A stretch of 64,000 bases of DNA from Histomonas meleagridis 2922-C6/04-290x (GCA_020184695.1 JAANOX010000113.1:1-64000); one strand, 5' to 3'. Shown: positions 60-64,000, numbered from the stretch's first letter. Program-made: numbers and translations. Notes: a model not told the origin generated them from the sequence alone.

Positions 60-1029
60 TTATTTAATTATTTCTGTATGACCATTAAAAGATGCTAACA
101 TAAGTGCTGTTTCATATAATTTAAATAATTTTCAAATATTATTTTAAAATTTTACATTATTAAAATATATTTTAAACAAAACAAATAAATATTTTTAGCA
201 TTAATATCAATTCCTTTTTGTTCAAGAAATTTAACTATTTCTGATTTAGATGCTATCATAAGTGCTGTTTGAAATAATTTAAATAATTTCCAAATATTAT
301 TTTGAAATATAAAATTACTAAAATAAATTTTAAATAAAACAAATAAATATTTTTAGCATTAACATCAATTCCTTTTTGTTCAAGAAGTGATTTAACTATT
401 TCTGTATGACCATTTGAAGATGCCCAAATAAGTGCTGTTTCAGATAATTTAAATAAATTCCATATATTATTTCAAAATATAAAATTATTTAAATAAATTT
501 TAAATAAAACAAATAAAATATTTTTAGCATTAATATCAATTCCTTTTTGTTCAAGAAGTAATTCAACTATTTCAAAATGTTCATTTTCTAATGCACGTAA
601 AAGTGCTGTTTCAAATAATTTAAATAATTCCCAAATATTATTTTGAAATATAAAATTACTAAAATAAATTTTAAATAAAACAAATAAATATTTTTAGCAT
701 TAACATCAATTCCTTTTTGTTCAAGAAGTGATTTAACTATTTCTGTATGACCATTTGAAGATGCCCAAATAAGTGCTGTTTCAGATAATTTAAATAAATT
801 CCATATATTATTTCAAAATATAAAATTATTTAAATAAATTTTAAATAAAACAAATAAATATTTTTAGCATTAATATCAATTCCTTCTTGTTCAAGAAGTA
901 ATTTAACTATTTCTGTATGACCATTTGAAGATGCAAACATAAGTGCTGTTTCATATAATTTAAATAATTTTCAAATATTATTTTAAAATTTTACATTATT
1001 AAAATATATTTTAAATAAAACAAATAAAT
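60..1029 (-). repeat. Ankyrin cassette array 1: six ankyrin-coding segments separated by 77/78-nt spacers, about 170-bp period; continuation of the 991-2034 gene
   Basis: Minus-strand segments translate as ETALMFASSNGHTEIVKLLLEQEGIDINAKN-like units (93 nt; one 81 nt). Spacers at 114-190, 272-348, 442-519, 613-689, 783-859 and 953-1029. The last segment ends in TAA at 60-62. Confidence 0.9.
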
Positions 1030-2034
1030 ATTTTTAGCATTAATATCAATTCCTTTTTGTTTTAAAATATATTTAACAAGTTCCTTGTTTCCTGATCCTG
1101 CTGAAAATACCAATATATCATGCGGATTTGAATGCTCTTTAAGAAAATATTCAACTAAAAAAATATTTCCAATCATTGCTGCTTCATCAATAATATCATC
1201 ATTGATTTTCATTCCTTCTTTAAGTAAAAATGAAAATATTTCATAATTATGATATAAAATACAATGTCTTCCTAATTCTTCTAAATTATTAATTTCTTTT
1301 AATTTAAAATCACAAAGATATTTAAAGATATCATTTCGATGAAACAAAATTGCTGTTTCATATGCATATTCAAATGACGAATGATTTTGTTCACATAAAT
1401 GAATAATTTCTTCATTTCCACCTGCAACAGCATATTTACCTGTGTTTTCTACATTTGCACCATTTACAAGTAAATATTTAAAACATTTAATAGATCCAAA
1501 AAATGCAGCATAATCAATTAATGAAACTTTTTTCTTGTTAATAAAAGAACATCTTTCATAAAGTGATGGCTCAATATATTGATCGAAATCAAAATTTGTT
1601 TGTGATGATATTTCTTGAAGTTTTTCTATTTTATCATTTCGAATTATTTTCGAAATTTCATTCGGATTATGTCCTTCACTAATTAATTTCTTATGTAATT
1701 CCCAATCATTCTTTGAAAGTTCTTCATAATTTACAAAATCATTTTCCCTTAAATAGATTGCTAATTTATCTTTAGACATATAATGCACAAAATAAGCACT
1801 CTGGTTGTTTTTTACAATATTTGGTTCAAGAAAATTATGTTCAATCATAGCTTCAAGAAGATAAGATGATTCATTTGTATTAATATCATTAAGAAATCGC
1901 CCAAACACACCAAATATATTTGATTTGATTTTATTACTATCTTCAAATATTCTTATTTCTTTAATAATATTCAAAAATAAATCTGCGTTATTATTTTTAA
2001 TCACAAAGGAATAATATATCATTTGAATATTCAT
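991..2034 (-). CDS. DUF3447-type ankyrin-repeat protein, N-terminal part; the last ~13 codons of the ORF are read-through into the first spacer
   Basis: Motifs NDWELHKKLISEGHNPNEISKIIRND, LIDYAAFFGSIKCFKYL and YAVAGGNEEIIHLCEQ, then ankyrin repeats ending GIDINAKN-IYLFYLKYILIM*. Confidence 0.85.
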   Translation of the reverse strand: MNIQMIYYSFVIKNNNADLFLNIIKEIRIFEDSNKIKSNIFGVFGRFLNDINTNESSYLLEAMIEHNFLEPNIVKNNQSAYFVHYMSKDKLAIYLRENDFVNYEELSKNDWELHKKLISEGHNPNEISKIIRNDKIEKLQEISSQTNFDFDQYIEPSLYERCSFINKKKVSLIDYAAFFGSIKCFKYLLVNGANVENTGKYAVAGGNEEIIHLCEQNHSSFEYAYETAILFHRNDIFKYLCDFKLKEINNLEELGRHCILYHNYEIFSFLLKEGMKINDDIIDEAAMIGNIFLVEYFLKEHSNPHDILVFSAGSGNKELVKYILKQKGIDINAKNIYLFYLKYILIM

Positions 2035-2478
2035 GAAATCATAAGATAAAGGATGGATTTCATCAAATTTGTTGATTATTTAACCCAAAGATTTTGAGAA
2101 ATTCTCTTCATTCAAACCAAAAATTGCTTGGCTTATTGATAGAAGTGTTCCCCAGTCGCAATGTTCATTTGGTCTCATGTGGAAATTGACAATTTCAATT
2201 CTTAACGATTTTTAGGAAAAAAGAACCGATATATCAATTCAAATTTGAATTAAACAAAGCATTTAATCGTTTTATTCCCCGTCACTTTTTTCAATCTTGG
2301 TCAATTTACGTTAAGTCAAAGTGATAAACCTGAGATGACATTTTATTTATGTATAAATTTGTGAAGTATATTGATAATAAATAAAAATATATAACAAAAA
2401 GAATTCAATTGAACAATACTATAAATAATTAAATAATATTTCACAAATTTGCAGGAAGGCTTTTATTTATTAAAGTGT

Positions 2479-20232: not shown

Positions 20233-20304
20233 GGGTGTGTAGCTCAGTGGTAGAGCGCTACATTTGCATTGTAGAGGCCTGGGGTTCGATCCCCCACACA
20301 TCCA
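20233..20304 (+). tRNA. tRNA-Ala (anticodon UGC)
   Basis: Acceptor stem GGGTGTG/CACATCC with the G3:U70 Ala identity pair; D arm AGCTCAGTGGTAGAGC; anticodon arm CTACA-TTTGCAT-TGTAG; T arm GGGG-TTCGAT-CCCC; oligo-T terminator follows. Confidence 0.97.
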
Positions 20305-26359: not shown

Positions 26360-26996
26360 ACTTTAAGAGTAAATAATACTATGAATAATAATTAATTTTT
26401 TGTTGTTATGAATTTTTCATCATTTTTTTCACAAAAATTTTCATCAAATTATATGAAAATCATACAATGAAATATGATATAAAATATTCTATTTATCAAA
26501 TTTAATGCGTTAATTATAATATATGAAAACAAACTGAATTTAGGAAATGTTTATTTCAATATTTAAATATTTCCTCTTTTATCCTTGTGAATCTTTTCAT
26601 TTTATTAAGTCGTCACTTTTATGATGTTGAATTTTGTCTTCAAATAATCGTATAATTTCTACATTTTTCTTTTCTGATGCTATCATAAGCGCTGTTTTAT
26701 ATGTTTATAAGTAATTCCAAATGTTTATATGAAATTTCATATTTTTTAAAAATATTTTAAATAAAACAAAGAAATATTTTTAACATCGATATCAATATTC
26801 TCTTGTTCAAGAAGTAATTTAACTATTTCTGTATGACCATTTTCAGATGCAATCATAAGTGCTGTCCAAAATAATTTAAATAATTTCCAAATATTATTTT
26901 GAATTCTCATCAAGCCATATTTTGAAATGAAAAAATTAAAAAAATAATTTCGTTCACAATTTTCAATTCAATTTAAAATTGCAATAATTTTATCGT

Positions 26997-27871
26997 TTAT
27001 ATAGAAAGTGCCTCTGAAATTTCCATACCAGCTCTGCTCATGTCTACTGAAACATATCGAGTATATGCAGAACTTTTCCACCTTCCATGGGCTTTTATGA
27101 TACAATCATTAACATTTTTTAGTGAGGCATAATATGCTGCTCCTATACGAGAACTATGAAATCCATAATTTTGATATTTTTCAACTCCAATAGTCCTAAG
27201 TACATAAAGAAGATGAGCTCTGAGTGTGGATTGAGTTCGAGATTCTATGTGATCATTACTAGAAATTAAGTTCAAATGATTTATAAATCGGAATGGGCTA
27301 TAATCTGTCTTATTATCATTAATATATGTAAACGTATTATTCCCGAACTGATCTGTTTTAGAAGTCTGTATGTTTAGTTTTATTAAGTTTTCGCCTTCAA
27401 TTACAATATCGCTTTTTTTAGAGTTTAGCGCTTCACTTATTCTGAGAAATGCTGCAAACATTAACGATATCAAGAATATAAACTTCAAATTATCAATATT
27501 TGTTGGTGGAAATTTTTCAATTATTTTCGAAAACCATTTTGGATCAAACGGTAACTTTGCATTTGGACAAAAACCTGAATATAGTGACCTTTTTATTCCA
27601 CTCTTAAATATTTTGAATTTTAATGAATGTGTTAATATTTCCAAGTCATTTTGTTGAAAATAATGTGTAAAACTATTAATGTAAGCTAGTAACGTACAAC
27701 ATTTCATATTCTGATTCTTTTTAAATATAATAAATGCAACCATTTTGTTATGAGTAATAGGAAATGGTTCTTCGTGTATTAGATTTATCATCACTTTGGC
27801 ATAAGCATGAATCAGCCTATCATATGTACTTTTCGTTCCTGCTGAAAAAAGTGTCGATGAGAATTACACAT
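26997..27871 (-). CDS. Tyrosine recombinase (phage_integrase fold); probable 1-nt frameshift near the 5' end
   Basis: Catalytic R (FLRISE), K (SKTDQFG), HxxR (FHSSR), H/W (HGRW) and Y (AYTRY). The frame extends upstream of the track's GTG start (SAGTKSTYDRLIHAY) to a TAA. An ATG at 27869-27871 is out of frame by one base across a T6 run. Confidence 0.88.
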
Positions 27872-27934
27872 AATAAAGGCAACTTTTTAAGACGATGACC
27901 AAAGTTCATCGTCTTAAAAAGTTGCCTTTATTAT
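27870..27934. repeat. Perfect 29-bp inverted repeat with 7-bp centre
   Basis: ATAATAAAGGCAACTTTTTAAGACGATGA (27870-27898), centre CCAAAGT, TCATCGTCTTAAAAAGTTGCCTTTATTAT (27906-27934). Confidence 0.97.
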
Positions 27935-28399
27935 TTGTGAAATATCAAATGATTAAAATAAACATAAAATAAAACAAATAAATATTTTTAGCATTAATAT
28001 CGATTCCTTCATGTTCAAGAAGTAATTTCACTATTTCTATATAACCATTTTCAGATGCTAATATAAGTGCTGAATAAAATAATTTAAATAATTTTCAAAT
28101 ATTATTTTGAAATATCAAATTATTAAAATAAATTCTAAATAAAACAAATGAATATCTTTAGCATTAATATCAATTCCTTTTTGTTTAAGAAGAACTTTTG
28201 TAACTTCAGAATGACCTTTGCGTGTTGCCCAATGAAGTGCTGTTTCATTAATTTTATATAAATTCCAAAAAAAAAAAATATTAAACGTTAAATCTTCATG
28301 ATAAATATATTTACCATTAATATCAAATATTTTCTGTTCGATTTGCCATTCAATAAATGATGCAAATTCTTTTTGGTGCTGAGAAAGCATCTGGTTTTA

Positions 28400-45367: not shown

Positions 45368-48034
45368 ATGTCCGAAGGAAATACCGCTGATCCAGCATCT
45401 TATGATAATCTATCAGATACAGAAATCGATCCTGAAGATCTTTTTAAAGCAGATCCGTTAACTGTTTATCCTGACCTCATTATGGAGAACTTAAAGAAAA
45501 CAAGAAGGAGGGTAGGCGATGTATCACTGGCAAGAATGAATAGAAGAAAGCACAAAGATGAAGTTGATGCCAAGAATAGACACTCTCAACAAGTATCTGC
45601 TCCTCCAATAATTCCAGAAAAGAAACCAGCTCGTGTTCCAATGCCTGGTATGATGCCAATGCCTGGAATGGTTCCCATGCCTGGAATGGGTGCTAGACCT
45701 CCACTTAAAAAGATTCCAGGAATGGCACCAATGCCAGGAATGGGTGGAATGGATTTAAGCAACAACCCTCTTTTCAAGAAAAGAATGGCAAAGAAAGCAG
45801 AAACAGAAGGCGAATCCGAAGAAGCTAAGAAGAAAGCTGAAGAGGAAGAAGCTAAGAAGAAAGCTGAAGAAGAAGAAGCTAAGAAGAAAGCTGAAGAGGA
45901 AGAAGCTAAGAAGAAAGCTGAAGAGGAAGAAGCTAAGAAGAAAGCTGAAGAAGAAGAAGCTAAGAAGAAAGCTGAAGAGGAAGAAGCTAAGAAGAAAGCT
46001 GAAGAAGAAGCCAGACTTAAGGCAGAAGAAGAAGCCAGACTTAAGGCAGAAGAAGAAGCCAGACTTAAGGCAGAAGAAGAAGCCAGACTTAAGGCAGAAG
46101 AAGAAGCACGTCTCAAAGCTGAAGAAGAAGCAAGACTTAAGGCAGAAGAAGAAGCAAGACTTAAGGCAGAAGAAGAAGCACGTCTCAAAGCTGAAGAAGA
46201 AGCAAGACTTAAGGCAGAAGAAGAAGCCAGACTTAAGGCAGAAGAAGAAGCACGTCTCAAAGCTGAAGAAGAAGCAAGACTTAAGGCAGAAGAAGAAGCC
46301 AGACTTAAGGCAGAAGAAGAAGCACGTCTCAAAGCTGAAGAAGAAGCAAGACTTAAGGCAGAAGAAGAAGCAAGACTTAAGGCAGAAGAAGAAGCTAGAC
46401 TTAAGGCAGAAGAAGAAGCTAGACTTAAGGCAGAAGAAGAAGCTAGACTTAAGGCAGAAGAAGAAGCTAGACTTAAGGCAGAAGAAGAAGCAAGACTTAA
46501 GGCAGAAGAAGAAGCACGTCTCAAAGCTGAAGAAGAAGCTAGACTTAAGGCAGAAGAAGAAGCACGTCTCAAAGCTGAAGAAGAAGCAAGACTTAAGGCA
46601 GAAGAAGAAGCTAGACTTAAGGCAGAAGAAGAAGCTAGACTTAAGGCAGAAGAAGAAGCTAGACTTAAGGCAGAAGAAGAAGCTAGACTTAAGGCAGAAG
46701 AAGAAGCAAGACTTAAGGCAGAAGAAGAAGCACGTCTCAAAGCTGAAGAAGAAGCTAGACTTAAGGCAGAAGAAGAAGCACGTCTCAAAGCTGAAGAAGA
46801 AGCAAGACTTAAGGCAGAAGAAGAAGCAAGACTTAAGGCAGAAGAAGAAGCTAGACTTAAGGCAGAAGAAGAAGCCAGAAAGAAGGCTGAGGAAGAAAGA
46901 CTCAAAGCTGAAGAAGAAGCAAGACTCAAAGCTGAAGAAGAAGCAAGACTCAAAGCTGAAGAAGAAGCAAGACTCAAAGCTGAAGAAGAAGCAAGAAAGA
47001 AGGCTGAGGAAGAAAGACTCAAAGCTGAAGAAGAAGCCAGAAAGAAGGCTGAAGAAGAAGCAAGACTCAAAGCTGAAGAAGAAGCCAGAAAGAAGGCTGA
47101 GGAAGAAAGACTCAAAGCTGAAGAAGAAGCAAGAAAGAAGGCTGAAGAAGAAGCAAGACTCAAAGCTGAAGAAGAAGCCAGAAAGAAGGCTGAGGAAGAA
47201 AGACTCAAAGCTGAAGAAGAAGCCAGAAAGAAGGCTGAGGAAGAAAGACTCAAAGCTGAAGAAGAAGCAAGAAAGAAAGCTGAGGAAGAAGAAAGACAAA
47301 GAGAAGAAGAAAGAAGAAGAGCTGAAGAAGAAAGACAAAGAGCAGAAGAAGAGCGCAAAGCCATTGAAGAATCCAGAATCAAAGAGGCAGAAGACGAAGT
47401 CGAAAGAATTAGAAGGGAAGAACAAGAACAACTCACAAGAATCAGCGAAGAAGGTCAAATTGATACCAAATTTATTATTGTTGGCGATTCCAATGTTGGC
47501 AAGACCTCACTCACATCTCGTTTCATCAGCAACAGCTTCACCAAAGCCAGCAACACAGCAGCCTTTGATGTATCAGAGAGGACCATTCTCCATAATGACC
47601 GTCGCGTCAAAGTCAGTGTATGGGACACTGCAGGCCAAGAGTCCTATCAATCACTTGTTCCGAAGTATTATCGTGGTGCGAATGTAGCTATCATTGTGTT
47701 TTCATTTGACCAACGATCATCACTTGAAAATGTACAAAATTGGTACAATGCAATTGTTGAGCAAACGCAAAACCCAATTATCTGTCTCTGTGGTAACAAG
47801 AAGGATATTCCAGAAGATAAGCGCCAAGTGACATCCGATGAAGGAATTGCATTAGCGCAAAGACTTGGAATTGAATATTATGAAACAAGCGCATTCAAAT
47901 GCATTGGAATTGATCCAATGTTTAGATTACTTGCTGGTAAATATGCAGATATGTCTCCACTGGAAAAGACAGAAAAGCAGCCAACGCCAATAGAACCAGT
48001 GCCACAACCACCTCGATCATGGTGCTCCTGCTAA
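45368..48034 (+). CDS. Giant Rab-like GTPase: Pro/Met/Gly-rich segment, long E/K/R repeat helix, C-terminal Rab domain
   Basis: First ATG gives MSEGNTAD; (KAEEEARL)n; [24 protein letters not shown]-terminal CSC. Confidence 0.9.
45824..47290 (+). repeat. Coding minisatellite: 27-bp (AKKKAEEEE) x6, then about 36 24-bp (KAEEEARL) units, then mixed 21/24-bp units
   Basis: Direct inspection of GAAGAAGAAGC(C/A/T)AGACTTAAGGCA and GCACGTCTCAAAGCT variants. Confidence 0.97.
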
Positions 48035-60675: not shown

Positions 60676-60972
60676 TTAATATTCACATTGTTTTTTGAGT
60701 TCCAAATATCGATCATAAAGTTTGTTGTTCTCTTCAATTTGTTGTGCTAACTCATTCTCAACATTAGATAAACGAGCAACCTCTTTTTCGAGCTCTGAAT
60801 TCATTCGATTGGTTTCTTCAAGTGCATTTTCAAGATATTGTATCTGTTGTTCTAAATTCCATTGCTCAGTATACTCTTCTTCCGTGAGCTCAGGTTGAGA
60901 TTGAACTTGTGGTTTGACGTCAGTGATTTGCTTTGCATTCGCAACTTTTGGTGCTAAGGGAACGCGGCTCAT
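60676..60972 (-). CDS. Small coiled-coil hypothetical protein
   Basis: 98-aa ATG-started ORF, E/Q/L-rich heptads. Confidence 0.65.
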   Translation of the reverse strand: MSRVPLAPKVANAKQITDVKPQVQSQPELTEEEYTEQWNLEQQIQYLENALEETNRMNSELEKEVARLSNVENELAQQIEENNKLYDRYLELKKQCEY

Positions 60973-61419
60973 TTACTGTGGCGCCAAATCAATCTGTCAC
61001 TTTTTGTTTGATGTAGAACGTCACTTTTTTGTTAAACTAAATTCAAATTTTGTCAAAAATTTTATAAGTGGTTTCGACCAAATATTGATTGAAAAATAAA
61101 CTATGTAAAGTTATGAAATGAAGTGAATGAGAATATTACCAACTTTTTATCGAAACAGATAATATCAATTTTAATTTATCTACTGTTTAAAGCTTGACGA
61201 CACTTCTGCGTATATTTATTTATGGGAAATTTTCCGAAAGTTTTAACTTTTTTTAAAAAACATACATAATGCTCATATGAATATAGACAATATAATTTTA
61301 TTTTTTTTCTTTTTGATATTTTATGTGTCTATGCAAGAAAAAGTGACTACAAAATTTCTCATTGGACGTCTCCAATTCGGATCCACTCTTTTTATACCTA
61401 AAAAAAATTATAAATTTTA

Positions 61420-63408
61420 TTATTTAGTGTGTTGATTTATGTATTGTTCAAAAAATTCAATTGTTTCATCGCAACAATAAGATTTTGCTAAATCAAACGC
61501 TGTTTCAAATAATTTTATTATATTCCAAATGTTATTAAGAATCATCAAATTGTTAAAATAAATATTAAATAAAATATTTTAATATTTTTGGGATTTACAT
61601 CAATTCCATCTTGTTCAAGTAATAGTTTAACAATATCAACGTTATTATACTCAGAAGCAAACATAAGTGATGTATAATATGATGTTAATAATTTCCAAAT
61701 ATTAGATTTGAAACCCAATATTATGAGTATAAATATCGAATTAATTAAGTAAACATTTTTATAATTAATATCAGTTTCTTTTCGTTTAAGAAGAATTTCA
61801 ACAATTTCAATGTTACCATTCCGAGATGCTTTCATAAGTGCAATAGTATATACTATATTAGTAATATATAAATTACTATATTAAAATATATATTTTAAAT
61901 TAACACCAAAAAATATTATGAAACATCAAATTATTGAAATAAGTTTTAAACAAAACATATAAATATCTTTAGCATTAATATCAATTCCTTCCTGCAAAAG
62001 AAGCAATTTAACTATTTTTGTTTTACCATATTTAGATGCAAACATAAGTGCTGTTTGGAATAATATAAATAATTTCCAAATATTTTTTATAAATATTAAA
62101 AAATTGAATAAAATCTTGAATAAAACAAATAAGCATCTTTAGTATTAACATCAATTCCTTTATGTTTAAAAAGTAATTTAACTATTTTTGTATGACCTTT
62201 TTTAGATGCAGTCATAAGAATTGTTTCAAATAGCTTAAATAAAATCCAAATATTATTTTGATATATTAAATTATTAAAATTAATTTTAAATAAAGCATAT
62301 AAATATCTTTTGCATTTACATCAATTCCATAGTTAATAAATAAATTTACTATTTCTGAAAAATTATTTGCACATGCAATCATAAATGCCGTATTAAATAA
62401 TATAAATGATTTCCAAATATTTTTTTGAAATATCAAATTGTTATAATATACATCAAATAGAACAACCAAATATCTTCAATATTAGTGTCGATTTCTTCTT
62501 GTTCTAGAAGTAATTTTACGACTTCAACATTATTTTTTTCAGTTGCTAATGTAAGTGCTGTTTTATGATTTTATATTTAACATCAAAATTTGGTTATAAA
62601 TTTCAAAAATATAAAATAAACATCAAAAAAATGAAATAAAAATTTTGATCATTAAGATTAAAACATTTTTTTCCAATAAATAATTTAACGATATCTAAAT
62701 TTCCATTAGCACATGAATCATAAATGCATTCCAACATTATTTATTCTAACATTATATTTCATTTTGAAATTTCAAATAACAAAAATTATTATCAAGCAAA
62801 ACAAAGAAAAATCCAATGCATTAATTTCAATTCCTTTATAATCAATAAGATGTTTATCTGTTTCAAAATGATCATTTTGAGTAGCTAACATAAGTGCTGT
62901 TTCATTTGGAAAGACTCCAATAAATATAAAGAAATTTTAAATTATTCATACAAAAATTCAATTTAATATAAAAATATTTGCAATATTTACTTTAATATTC
63001 TTTTGATTAAGTAGTAATTTAACAACTTCAATATGACCATTATATGATGCATCCATAAGTGGCGTCCAAAACAATTCAATTAAATTCCAAGTATTAATAA
63101 TAAATATTAATTCATTAAAACAAAAATTTTATTATATAAAAAAGTATTTTCATTATTAATATTAATTTTATCATGTTTAAGCATTAACTCTACTATTTCA
63201 ACATGACCATAATGTGAAGCTAAAGAAAGTGCTGTATCAAATATATTTAATAAATTCCAAATAAATTATTGAAGTTCGAAATAGTTAAAGTTAATTTTAA
63301 CTTTTGTAAAGAAATATTTTTATCATTGAGTTGAATATTTTTTTGTGCAAGAAACAATTTTGCAATTTCTAAAAACCCATTTTCACATGCAGCAATTAAA
63401 GGAGTATC
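61420..63408 (-). repeat. Ankyrin cassette array 3: 12 diverged ankyrin segments and 11 spacers
   Basis: Segments mostly 93 nt; spacers from left to right 77, 78, 117, 77, 77, 77, 77, 77, 72, 77, 77 nt. The terminal segment ETAFDLAKSYCCDETIEFFEQYINQHTK* ends at 61420-61422. Confidence 0.88.
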
Positions 63409-63432
63409 AAAAAATTATGATAAATTTTATTT

Positions 63433-64000
63433 AACGGTATGAAAAATTAGATATATAAAATAAACTTTAATAAATAAACTAGTTCCAAAAAATGGAAAGC
63501 ACGATAGAGAACGATAGAAATCAGATGGAAAGCTGGTCGTTGTTAGGATTTTATCTAGAAGATCCAATAAAAGCCAATATTGCTCAAAAAACATACCCAG
63601 GAGTAATGCATGATGAAAATAAAAATCAAGCGATTATAAGAATCAGAAGTTTCGGATTTACATATCGCGATATTGAACATTGTCTAAATACATCACAAAA
63701 GCATATTACATTAGTACTTAAAGAATATCAGCTAAGCGGAGAAGTTTCTTGTAAAAAGAGGGGAAGACCTCTAAAAATTGATAATAATGATAAAGCAAAA
63801 ATTGATGAAATAACCATCTCATCACCAAGGTCAACTTGCAAGCATATTTCACAACAAATAAGCAGTCCAGAAAAATCAATCAAAAAATCAACTATTGCAA
63901 AAATCAGACATGAATTACATTTTTTTTTCAAACCACCCAAAAGGAGACCTCAAATGACTCAAGCATGCTTGGATAGAAGACTTACTTTCGCTTATTCTAT
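63433..64000 (+). mobile_element. Tc1-like DNA transposon, 5' part; left boundary approximate, runs off the window
   Basis: The ankyrin spacer pattern stops at about 63433 and a transposase ORF follows. Confidence 0.65.
63492..64000 (+). CDS. Tc1-family transposase N-terminal region (partial; absent from the ORF track because there is no stop in the window)
   Basis: Hand translation: HTH-like GFTYRDIEHCLNTSQKHITLVLK, KRGRPLK, KSTIAKIRHELHF, KPPKRRPQMTQACLDRRLTFA. Confidence 0.8.
   Translation, partial: MESTIENDRNQMESWSLLGFYLEDPIKANIAQKTYPGVMHDENKNQAIIRIRSFGFTYRDIEHCLNTSQKHITLVLKEYQLSGEVSCKKRGRPLKIDNNDKAKIDEITISSPRSTCKHISQQISSPEKSIKKSTIAKIRHELHFFFKPPKRRPQMTQACLDRRLTFAYS

Follow-up and report, generated by a model that had tools for sequence, protein, structure and literature searches.

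Spacers that interrupt a trichomonad-type ankyrin gene probably consist of four 17-nt mini-introns around three single-codon micro-exons

How could a continuous protein be made from an ankyrin gene in which every repeat is broken, always at the same point, by an AT-rich spacer that destroys the reading frame? The question is raised by positions 60-1029 and their 5' part (locus 1) of the window, by which we mean the whole 64,000-nt stretch of DNA analysed here (G+C 29.6%). On the minus strand of locus 1, 93-nt ankyrin cassettes alternate with the spacers in a tandem array with a period of 170 nt and 6.0 copies (span 55-1061, Tandem Repeats Finder), and two sister arrays, loci 2 and 3, share this architecture. 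The features are listed below, with mini-introns and kept codons placed as the model developed in this paper would predict.

1030-2034, minus strand: ORF encoding an N-terminal DUF3447-type domain followed by ankyrin cassette 1; its 335 codons run from ATG 2034 through Asn codon 1030-1032 (Pfam matches: DUF3447, Ank_2, Ank; 48-62% identity to Histomonas meleagridis proteins)
953-1029, minus strand: spacer 1, 77 nt; predicted mini-introns 1013-1029, 993-1009, 973-989 and 953-969; predicted kept codons 1010-1012 AAA, 990-992 AAA and 970-972 GAA (K-K-E)
860-952, minus strand: ankyrin cassette 2, 93 nt, ETALMFASSNGHTEIVKLLLEQEGIDINAKN
783-859, minus strand: spacer 2, 77 nt; predicted mini-introns 843-859, 823-839, 803-819 and 783-799; predicted kept codons 840-842 AAA, 820-822 TAT and 800-802 GGA (K-Y-G)
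690-782, minus strand: ankyrin cassette 3, 93 nt
613-689, minus strand: spacer 3, 77 nt; predicted mini-introns 673-689, 653-669, 633-649 and 613-629; predicted kept codons 670-672 AAA, 650-652 TAT and 630-632 GGG (K-Y-G)
520-612, minus strand: ankyrin cassette 4, 93 nt
442-519, minus strand: spacer 4, 78 nt; predicted mini-introns 502-519 (18 nt), 482-498, 462-478 and 442-458; predicted kept codons 499-501 AAA, 479-481 TAT and 459-461 GGA (K-Y-G)
349-441, minus strand: ankyrin cassette 5, 93 nt
272-348, minus strand: spacer 5, 77 nt; predicted mini-introns 332-348, 312-328, 292-308 and 272-288; predicted kept codons 329-331 AAA, 309-311 TAT and 289-291 GGA (K-Y-G)
191-271, minus strand: ankyrin cassette 6, 81 nt, four residues shorter
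114-190, minus strand: spacer 6, 77 nt; predicted mini-introns 174-190, 154-170, 134-150 and 114-130; predicted kept codons 171-173 AAA, 151-153 AAA and 131-133 GAA (K-K-E)
60-113, minus strand: last, truncated cassette with stop TAA at 60-62
26699-28390, minus strand: locus 2, sister array with 77-nt spacers at 28077-28153 and 26699-26775 and one spacer split by an element (~26892-27941)
61420-63493, minus strand: locus 3, sister array of 12 cassettes and 11 spacers, to which RNA contigs lacking the spacers were aligned

The coordinates bear out much of what the initial annotation had read from this array. Each of the six locus 1 spacers lies 3' of the hairpin Asn codon, and five measure 77 nt and the sixth 78 nt; the spacer sequences confirm that the interruption always follows the Asn/Asp codon and carries neither GT-AG borders nor ACTAAC. 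All cassettes are open (93 nt, except one of 81 nt and the final 54-nt stub) and the array ends in a proper stop, while unprocessed read-through gives the tail that had been described: the ORF at 991-2034 (minus strand) runs from ATG 2034 into spacer 1 and stops 12 codons past the Asn codon, ending ...NAKNIYLFYLKYILIM. The earlier window-wide tally of 77-nt spacers, 16 of 21, came close to our count, which depends on how the cassette ends are drawn: among 20 complete spacers, 14 measure 77 nt, two 78 nt, and one each 76, 72, 117 and 63 nt. Locus 3 is damaged: one of its junctions breaks the frame, another retains units, the N-terminal domain is absent, and unrelated sequence sets in near 63500. 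In locus 2, the element at ~26892-27941, which holds a tyrosine-recombinase-like ORF and a terminal inverted repeat, interrupts the third 17-nt unit of a spacer, between ATTTCA and CAAAATAATATTT, and is flanked on both sides by similar short sequences (CAAATAAT / CAAAATAAT). Elsewhere in the window, a tRNA gene at 20233-20304 (plus strand) is the sole Rfam match, and 45818-47350 (plus strand) holds about 55 copies of 24- and 27-nt coding repeats, rich in Glu, Ala, Lys and Arg, within a 901-residue ORF.

At the protein level, the cassettes are ankyrin repeats with a defined gap. The ORF at 994-2034 matches DUF3447 (PF11929, E=4e-10), with the ankyrin array downstream, and the 31-residue cassette matches Pfam Ank (PF00023 / PF12796) at positions 3-32 of 33 (E=4e-9 to 2e-12), which leaves each repeat short of exactly three residues, among them the conserved hairpin Gly of model position 2, which the cassettes lack. 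Sixteen cassettes, amounting to 496 codons, contain zero stops in a genome of 30% G+C, which is far beyond chance, and their variability is 0.22 at codon position 2 vs 0.41 and 0.36 at positions 1 and 3. A dN/dS of about 1 had been named beforehand as a sign of pseudogenes; pairwise values among these old paralogous cassettes are about 0.8, which alone does not prove purifying selection.

Aligning RNA to the arrays had been proposed as a check, and it was made at locus 3, where contigs from RNA-library runs (four runs of one study, the RNA label being the tool's guess) were aligned to 60801-64000. RNA-labelled runs of the same organism contain 36% of the sampled locus 3 31-mers, approximately the share expected from cassette-internal words only. 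The contigs consist of cassette-sized pieces in genomic order, without mismatch, from which the spacers are absent; for example, a 716-nt contig comprises six cassettes (63315-63493, 63145-63238, 62975-63068, 62811-62918, 62642-62734 and 62472-62566). Between consecutive pieces lie 8 unplaced contig letters, or at some junctions 5, 7 or 9, and the genomic gap minus the unplaced letters equals 68 nt at six of eight junctions, with a net loss of 69 nt at a 78-nt spacer and of 51 nt at a 72-nt spacer whose last piece has 12 nt. Intergenic bins have zero depth in this alignment, and one unspliced contig is present (62745-62840), as would be expected of RNA mixed with a little precursor. At locus 3, the spacers are thus removed at the RNA level, with a net loss of 68 nt and nine letters left behind, and this array is transcribed and processed despite its damage (frame shifted at 62734-62811, units retained at 61848-61964). 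The initial annotation's suggestion of an unconventional removal with a net loss of 68 nt, giving 34-residue repeats, is therefore upheld by the locus 3 contigs, in contrast to the simple form of a single 68-nt intron, considered below. Very highly expressed paralogues elsewhere in the genome (contig depth in the thousands) have the same cassette ends, with the hairpins NRG, EYE, VYG, NEE and DLG in between.

The ends of the RNA pieces indicate where the nine letters come from. RNA collinearity ends 0-1 nt past the Asn/Asp codon and restarts with the opening codon of the next cassette, even though the aligner can extend into spacers on matching letters (paralogue contigs enter a spacer by 6 nt at 61959). 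Because the pieces stop at the cassette ends even so, the nine kept letters are not spacer letters contiguous with the flanks, and the earlier suggestion that the opening codon pair of the spacer (IY, VY or similar) is exonic must be abandoned. In the model that we consider probable for this trichomonad-type DUF3447-ankyrin gene, from alignment end coordinates, counts and comparative sequence, a 77-nt spacer would comprise four 17-nt mini-introns at spacer positions 1-17, 21-37, 41-57 and 61-77, and three 3-nt micro-exons at positions 18-20, 38-40 and 58-60, each kept as a single codon. The mini-introns would follow an approximate consensus 5'-[A/G]TTT-N9-ATTT-3', starting AT or GT and ending TT. 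The arithmetic agrees (77 = 4x17 + 3x3; 68 = 4x17): excision of four pieces (68 nt) would leave three codons (9 nt) and yield 34-residue repeats with a normal hairpin, e.g. NAKN-KYG-ETAL, the three beta-hairpin residues of each repeat (Pfam Ank positions 33, 1 and 2) being encoded by one separate 3-nt micro-exon each. Triplet 58-60 supplies the missing hairpin Gly only if this model holds.

The fit at locus 3 is exact at all eight junctions, both for the chance run-on of pieces into matching letters and for the number of unplaced letters. The nine predicted letters are, for example, AAACGAGGA at 63239-63315 and GATGATGGA at 62395-62471, and the full predicted set for the eight junctions reads AAACGAGGA, AATAATGGA, AATAAA(+GGA...), GATGAAAAT(+TGGAATGC), GATGAAGAT, GATGATGGA, GATTGGGGA and AATGATGGA. 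When the start of the kept letters is scanned over positions 3-60, position 18 alone fits all eight upstream piece ends, the next best fitting six. Individual irregularities follow the same rule. Junction 62566 has two extra matching letters, the last codon being GAT and the spacer ending AT, and junction 62472 has nine unplaced letters, the first kept codon starting with G where the spacer starts with A. In the 76-nt spacer (62734-62811) the last piece has 16 nt by homology, and the RNA fits a 17-nt cut ending in T, which consumes one cassette letter and breaks the frame. The 12-nt last segment of the 72-nt spacer stays in the RNA, the exon starting exactly at GGA. For the 117-nt spacer (61848-61964) the piece start at 61888 was predicted by hand, and its fifth and sixth units, which start with TT, are retained. 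An 18-nt unit in the 78-nt spacer 61677-61754 is tolerated. These coordinates show that the first kept letter is spacer position 18 and that the last kept block ends at position 60. The position of the middle codon at 38-40 we infer from periodicity, composition and one exclusion: a contiguous block at 18-23 fails at the 72-nt spacer.

The periodicity and composition come from a position matrix of 34 distinct 77-nt spacers from the window, Histomonas and metagenome relatives. The matrix has a 20-nt period, with RTTT at positions 1, 21, 41 and 61 and ATTT at 14-17, 34-37, 54-57 and 74-77, interleaved with G/C-enriched, codon-like triplets at 18-20 (AAA or AAT), 38-40 (NAT or GAA) and 58-60 (G, G/A, N); position 58 is G in 32 of the 34, and G/C positions recur at lags of 20 and 40. 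In 42 distinct 77-nt spacers from the same sources, the kept triplets are stop-free without exception, against up to 41 stops in neighbouring phases, and their G+C is 0.30 vs about 0.1 in the rest of the spacer. Of the 42 spacers, 33 have K, N or D as residue 1; residue 2 is D, N, Y, K, E or H; and at residue 3, G stands in 28 spacers and E or D in 11. This series corresponds to the consensus ankyrin hairpin and to the three residues that the cassettes lack by comparison with Pfam Ank. The 168 mini-introns so delimited start with AT (88) or GT (49), and 128 of them end in TT. Length variants point the same way: spacers of 20, 23, 60, 80, 97, 117 and 137 nt parse as 17n+3m, the 20- and 23-nt spacers being one unit, and the 97-, 117- and 137-nt spacers five, six and seven. 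The 60-nt spacers lack one 17-nt unit (the first, second, third or fourth) and have the adjacent codons fused, as in one (L002) where AAA directly follows the Asn codon, and the 80-nt spacers have one extra codon, giving a 6-nt middle exon. Presence or absence of single units is the pattern expected of independent intron loss and gain.

Among other ways of dividing the spacer, the one that survives best, though we hold it to be improbable, likewise removes RNA but keeps an 8-nt micro-exon at the conserved motif ATTTGGAA, or two blocks in place of three. No part of the spacer is more strongly conserved than this motif, and an 8-mer ending 16 nt before the cassette satisfies the end constraints at seven junctions. 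This partition, however, would demand other donor rules at 62472, does not fit the 72-nt spacer, whose exon starts exactly at GGA after 5 foreign letters, disagrees with the scan in which only start position 18 matches all upstream ends, and leaves introns of 52 and 16 nt with the periodic codon-like triplets unexplained. Candidate 8-nt micro-exons at ATTTGGAA, TATTTGGA or the mid-spacer ATTTCAAA each fitted part of the end constraints and were rejected: either 62472 and the 72-nt spacer contradict them, or hidden ties must be assumed. Bracketing the kept letters by stop codons was also tried, but too many stop-free T-rich windows remain for it to discriminate.

A single non-canonical 68-nt intron per spacer, with the nine kept letters contiguous with the flanks (6+3, 8+1 or 4+5), would give the same net loss, and we regard it as very unlikely. 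The first spacer codons do resemble hydrophobic hairpin residues, and a spacer-less junction in a metagenome relative reads V-M-F, like a spacer start. Against this, the RNA pieces stop 0-1 nt after Asn/Asp and restart at the cassette despite an aligner that enters spacers elsewhere, and every division into p letters on the left and q (9-p) on the right meets a stop in some spacer: codon 2 of a Histomonas spacer is TAA, while a relative's spacer needs q <=4. Nor does one intron account for the 20-nt periodicity or the 17n+3m lengths.

It is just as improbable that the junctions are artefacts, produced by reverse-transcriptase template switching or by de Bruijn assembly jumps between the 20-nt repeats. 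The spacers are internally repetitive and AT-rich, contig depth at locus 3 is low (2-75), and the runs come from one study, all of which would favour such errors; yet four runs agree on the junction structure, which recurs at every junction, the products keep the frame and rebuild the consensus hairpin, different genera conserve the kept triplets as codons, and genomic DNA contains variants that differ precisely by the presence or absence of 17 nt.

We give still less credence to spacer-less DNA copies, from somatic excision or a second gene copy, as the source of the RNA. The letters between cassettes do look replaced and not simply cut. The contigs, however, begin in locus 3's own degenerate, spacer-like 5' flank (179 nt without mismatch), an unspliced contig of the same locus exists, the kept letters would all be templated within the spacer under the 4x17 model, and the intron-loss variants seen in genomes differ by single 17-nt units and not by whole spacers; DNA-level excision, one of the routes first suggested, is unlikely. 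Least credible of all are unprocessed pseudogene repeats or ribosomes that skip the spacers, for which the upstream in-frame TAA and one 78-nt spacer of locus 1 and the frame-breaking junction and unremoved segment of locus 3 might be cited: the RNA at locus 3 lacks the spacers, which rules out translational bypass there, the cassettes are stop-free, and in Histomonas the architecture is conserved and links two long ORFs.

The last point emerges from the relatives. The window comes from a parabasalid of the Histomonas/Dientamoeba/Tritrichomonas group. The nearest named homologues are in Histomonas meleagridis (48-62% identity), then in Tritrichomonas foetus and T. musculus and in many metagenome proteins, and nearly all homologous gene models stop a few residues after '...INAK[ND]', in the read-through of the first spacer. 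In H. meleagridis WSYJ01000186.1 (L003:4001-7614), five ankyrin cassettes and four 77-nt spacers link a 506-residue model to a 505-residue ORF; most likely the two are one gene. Such an arrangement is sensible only with the spacers taken out, and it speaks for a functional gene dependent on this processing. The second ORF of the pair has a long Ser/Thr/Pro-rich repeat region. T. foetus (L004:4134-4610) and T. musculus (L005:4065-5400) have the same hairpin position interrupted, by spacers of 46-49 nt and of about 350-367 nt, respectively, the latter without 20-nt periodicity; one T. foetus spacer parses as 17+9+17+3, and the spacers of these two species as sets give no convincing parse by the 17n+3m rule. 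Searches of protein databases turned up no spliced product from the window organism or from Histomonas, but only read-through truncations. Spacer-less junctions are rare in relatives: one reads AAT GTC ATG TTT GAG = N-VMF-E (L001:1853-1862), its VMF hairpin resembling the first nine spacer letters and not the K/N-x-G hairpins, and another reads ...R-KV-R... (L006:13438). At L006:11190-11260, the Histomonas gene for P0019 is truncated by an insert with G/C-rich terminal sequence, followed by a transposase-like ORF.

For locus 1, we infer that the spacers at 60-1029 are processed as at locus 3. The 4x17 model would then give the hairpins K-K-E, K-Y-G (four times) and K-K-E, in repeats such as ...GIDINAKN-KYG-ETAL.... 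An in-frame TAA at 2080-2082 (minus strand) lies upstream of ATG 2034, in a part that aligns to the conserved N-terminus of homologues, which read ...FGLNEENIE.SVQ... at this position; either the gene starts at ATG 2034 or it is a pseudogene. Because of this TAA and of the 18-nt first unit of spacer 4, the locus 1 copy may be decaying.

What performs the excision is a separate question, and known splice signals were sought in the spacers. There is no frame-keeping GT...AG pair in the window spacers, no ACTAAC or CTAAC in any spacer and no AG rule at the 3' ends of the 168 mini-introns, and U12-type motifs (5' ATATCCTT, branch TCCTTAAC, AC or AG end) are absent from the position matrix. No stable fold that would bring intron ends together is predicted: seven flanked spacers folded no better than shuffles (z -0.1 to +1.8), and stem or bulge-helix-bulge structures were discarded on this ground. 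Other candidates were likewise rejected. A lone GT...AG pair, from GT at spacer position 9 to AG in the ACAG of the next cassette, would remove 76 nt and lose the frame, and the RNA retains that cassette start; a 23-nt GT-AG piece occurs in two units only and is not general; and ciliate-type TA...TA excision would leave boundaries that are not conserved. Compared with canonical trichomonad introns, the spacers share absence from RNA at locus 3, but not GT/AG borders, ACTAAC or a length of 23-196 nt.

The unit measures 17 nt, with 16-18 tolerated, and site choice in the RNA follows suit: a 16-nt unit is cut at 17, an 18-nt unit is accepted, and one unit of 12 nt and two of 17 nt that begin with TT stay in place. 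This behaviour suggests that a U-rich 5' end is recognised together with a terminal U some 17 nt further on, more in the manner of a soft ruler than of a splice site rich in sequence signal. Our guess is that stepwise removal by the spliceosome is most likely: it would act successively on length-constrained, U-rich mini-introns, which would allow every 3-nt exon to be joined to a larger exon first. Against a spliceosome stand the missing AG, the missing branch motif and a size outside anything described, and a non-spliceosomal cut-and-join activity is possible. A more speculative proposal, which we put forward tentatively and think less likely to be right than wrong, is that the 17-nt pieces are no ordinary substrates of the spliceosome and that a length-measuring RNA excision-rejoining system, or a simplified recognition needing only RUUU...AUUU about 17 nt apart, would extend through the Histomonas/Dientamoeba/Tritrichomonas lineage and possibly to gene families besides the ankyrins; if it were true, genomes called intron-poor would hold thousands of unannotated introns and single-codon exons.

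Full-text searches for introns that are short or non-canonical in Histomonas, Dientamoeba, Tritrichomonas and parabasalids turned up no account of anything similar, and the mini-introns would form a new class of ultra-short introns that lack GT-AG ends. Confirmation would set new lower limits, of 17 nt for an intron without GT-AG ends and of 3 nt for a constitutive exon, with three in a row, and would provide a natural system for studying splice-site definition with almost no sequence signal. In Histomonas meleagridis, Tritrichomonas foetus, T. musculus and metagenome relatives, the models of this large ankyrin family end within a few residues of entering the first spacer. Confirmation would also mean that canonical-motif pipelines and published intron counts overlook an entire class, and that for these parasites of the veterinary and human gut, proteomes as well as analyses of gene families need revision.

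We know of no precedent for 17-nt introns without AG or for 3-nt exons in tandem, and comparison with known systems yields partial likenesses only. Translational bypass elements, known from phage T4 gene 60 and as mitochondrial 'byps' of Magnusiomyces, are likewise short, frame-breaking, AT-rich inserts absent from the protein, but there the gap stays in the mRNA, whereas the RNA described here lacks the spacers. The non-conventional introns of euglenids have non-GT-AG borders and an end-joining stem, and U12-type AT-AC introns carry ATATCCTT and an AC or AG end. The mini-introns resemble both in their non-GT-AG borders, some starting with AT, and differ in having no predicted fold, no ATATCCTT and no AC or AG end. 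The tiny introns of ciliates measure about 15-25 nt, those of Stentor 15 nt. Like the mini-introns, ciliate tiny introns (Paramecium and Nyctotherus, PMC5014332) are of fixed, extremely short length that avoids multiples of three; unlike the mini-introns, they keep GT-AG and are not set around single-codon exons.

The micro-exons recall those of animals and plants (3-27 nt; Ank3, PMC13046794), which are also multiples of 3 nt and encode surface-loop residues. By contrast, those exons have long canonical introns on both sides, are mostly spliced alternatively and depend on dedicated activators of splicing, while the spacer micro-exons would be constitutive, three in a row, with 17-nt pieces on either side. 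The closest setting is that of the parabasalids themselves. Trichomonad introns have 23-196 nt, GT-AG borders with a degenerate 5' motif GTWYWD, and an ACTAAC branch site fused to the 3' splice site, the short type B introns of Trichomonas vaginalis and T. stableri having 23-28 nt; studies of Trichomonas introns filter for canonical motifs and discard others (PMC12316389). The genome papers of H. meleagridis and T. musculus report few introns, in about 5% of genes and at most one per gene (PMC8529796, PMC11978803), and a paper on T. foetus regards predicted introns as unvalidated (PMC13735942). Like type B introns (PMC12316389), the mini-introns are removed from RNA, very short, T-rich, of narrow length and hosted by Parabasalia, and about 29% of them start with GTTT, compatible with GTWYWD. 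Unlike type B introns, they have no 3' AG (TT in 76%) and no CTAAC, half start with AT, and they measure 17 nt vs at least 23; and whereas trichomonad introns are reported at most one or two per gene, the mini-introns would stand up to seven in tandem, with 3-nt exons between them.
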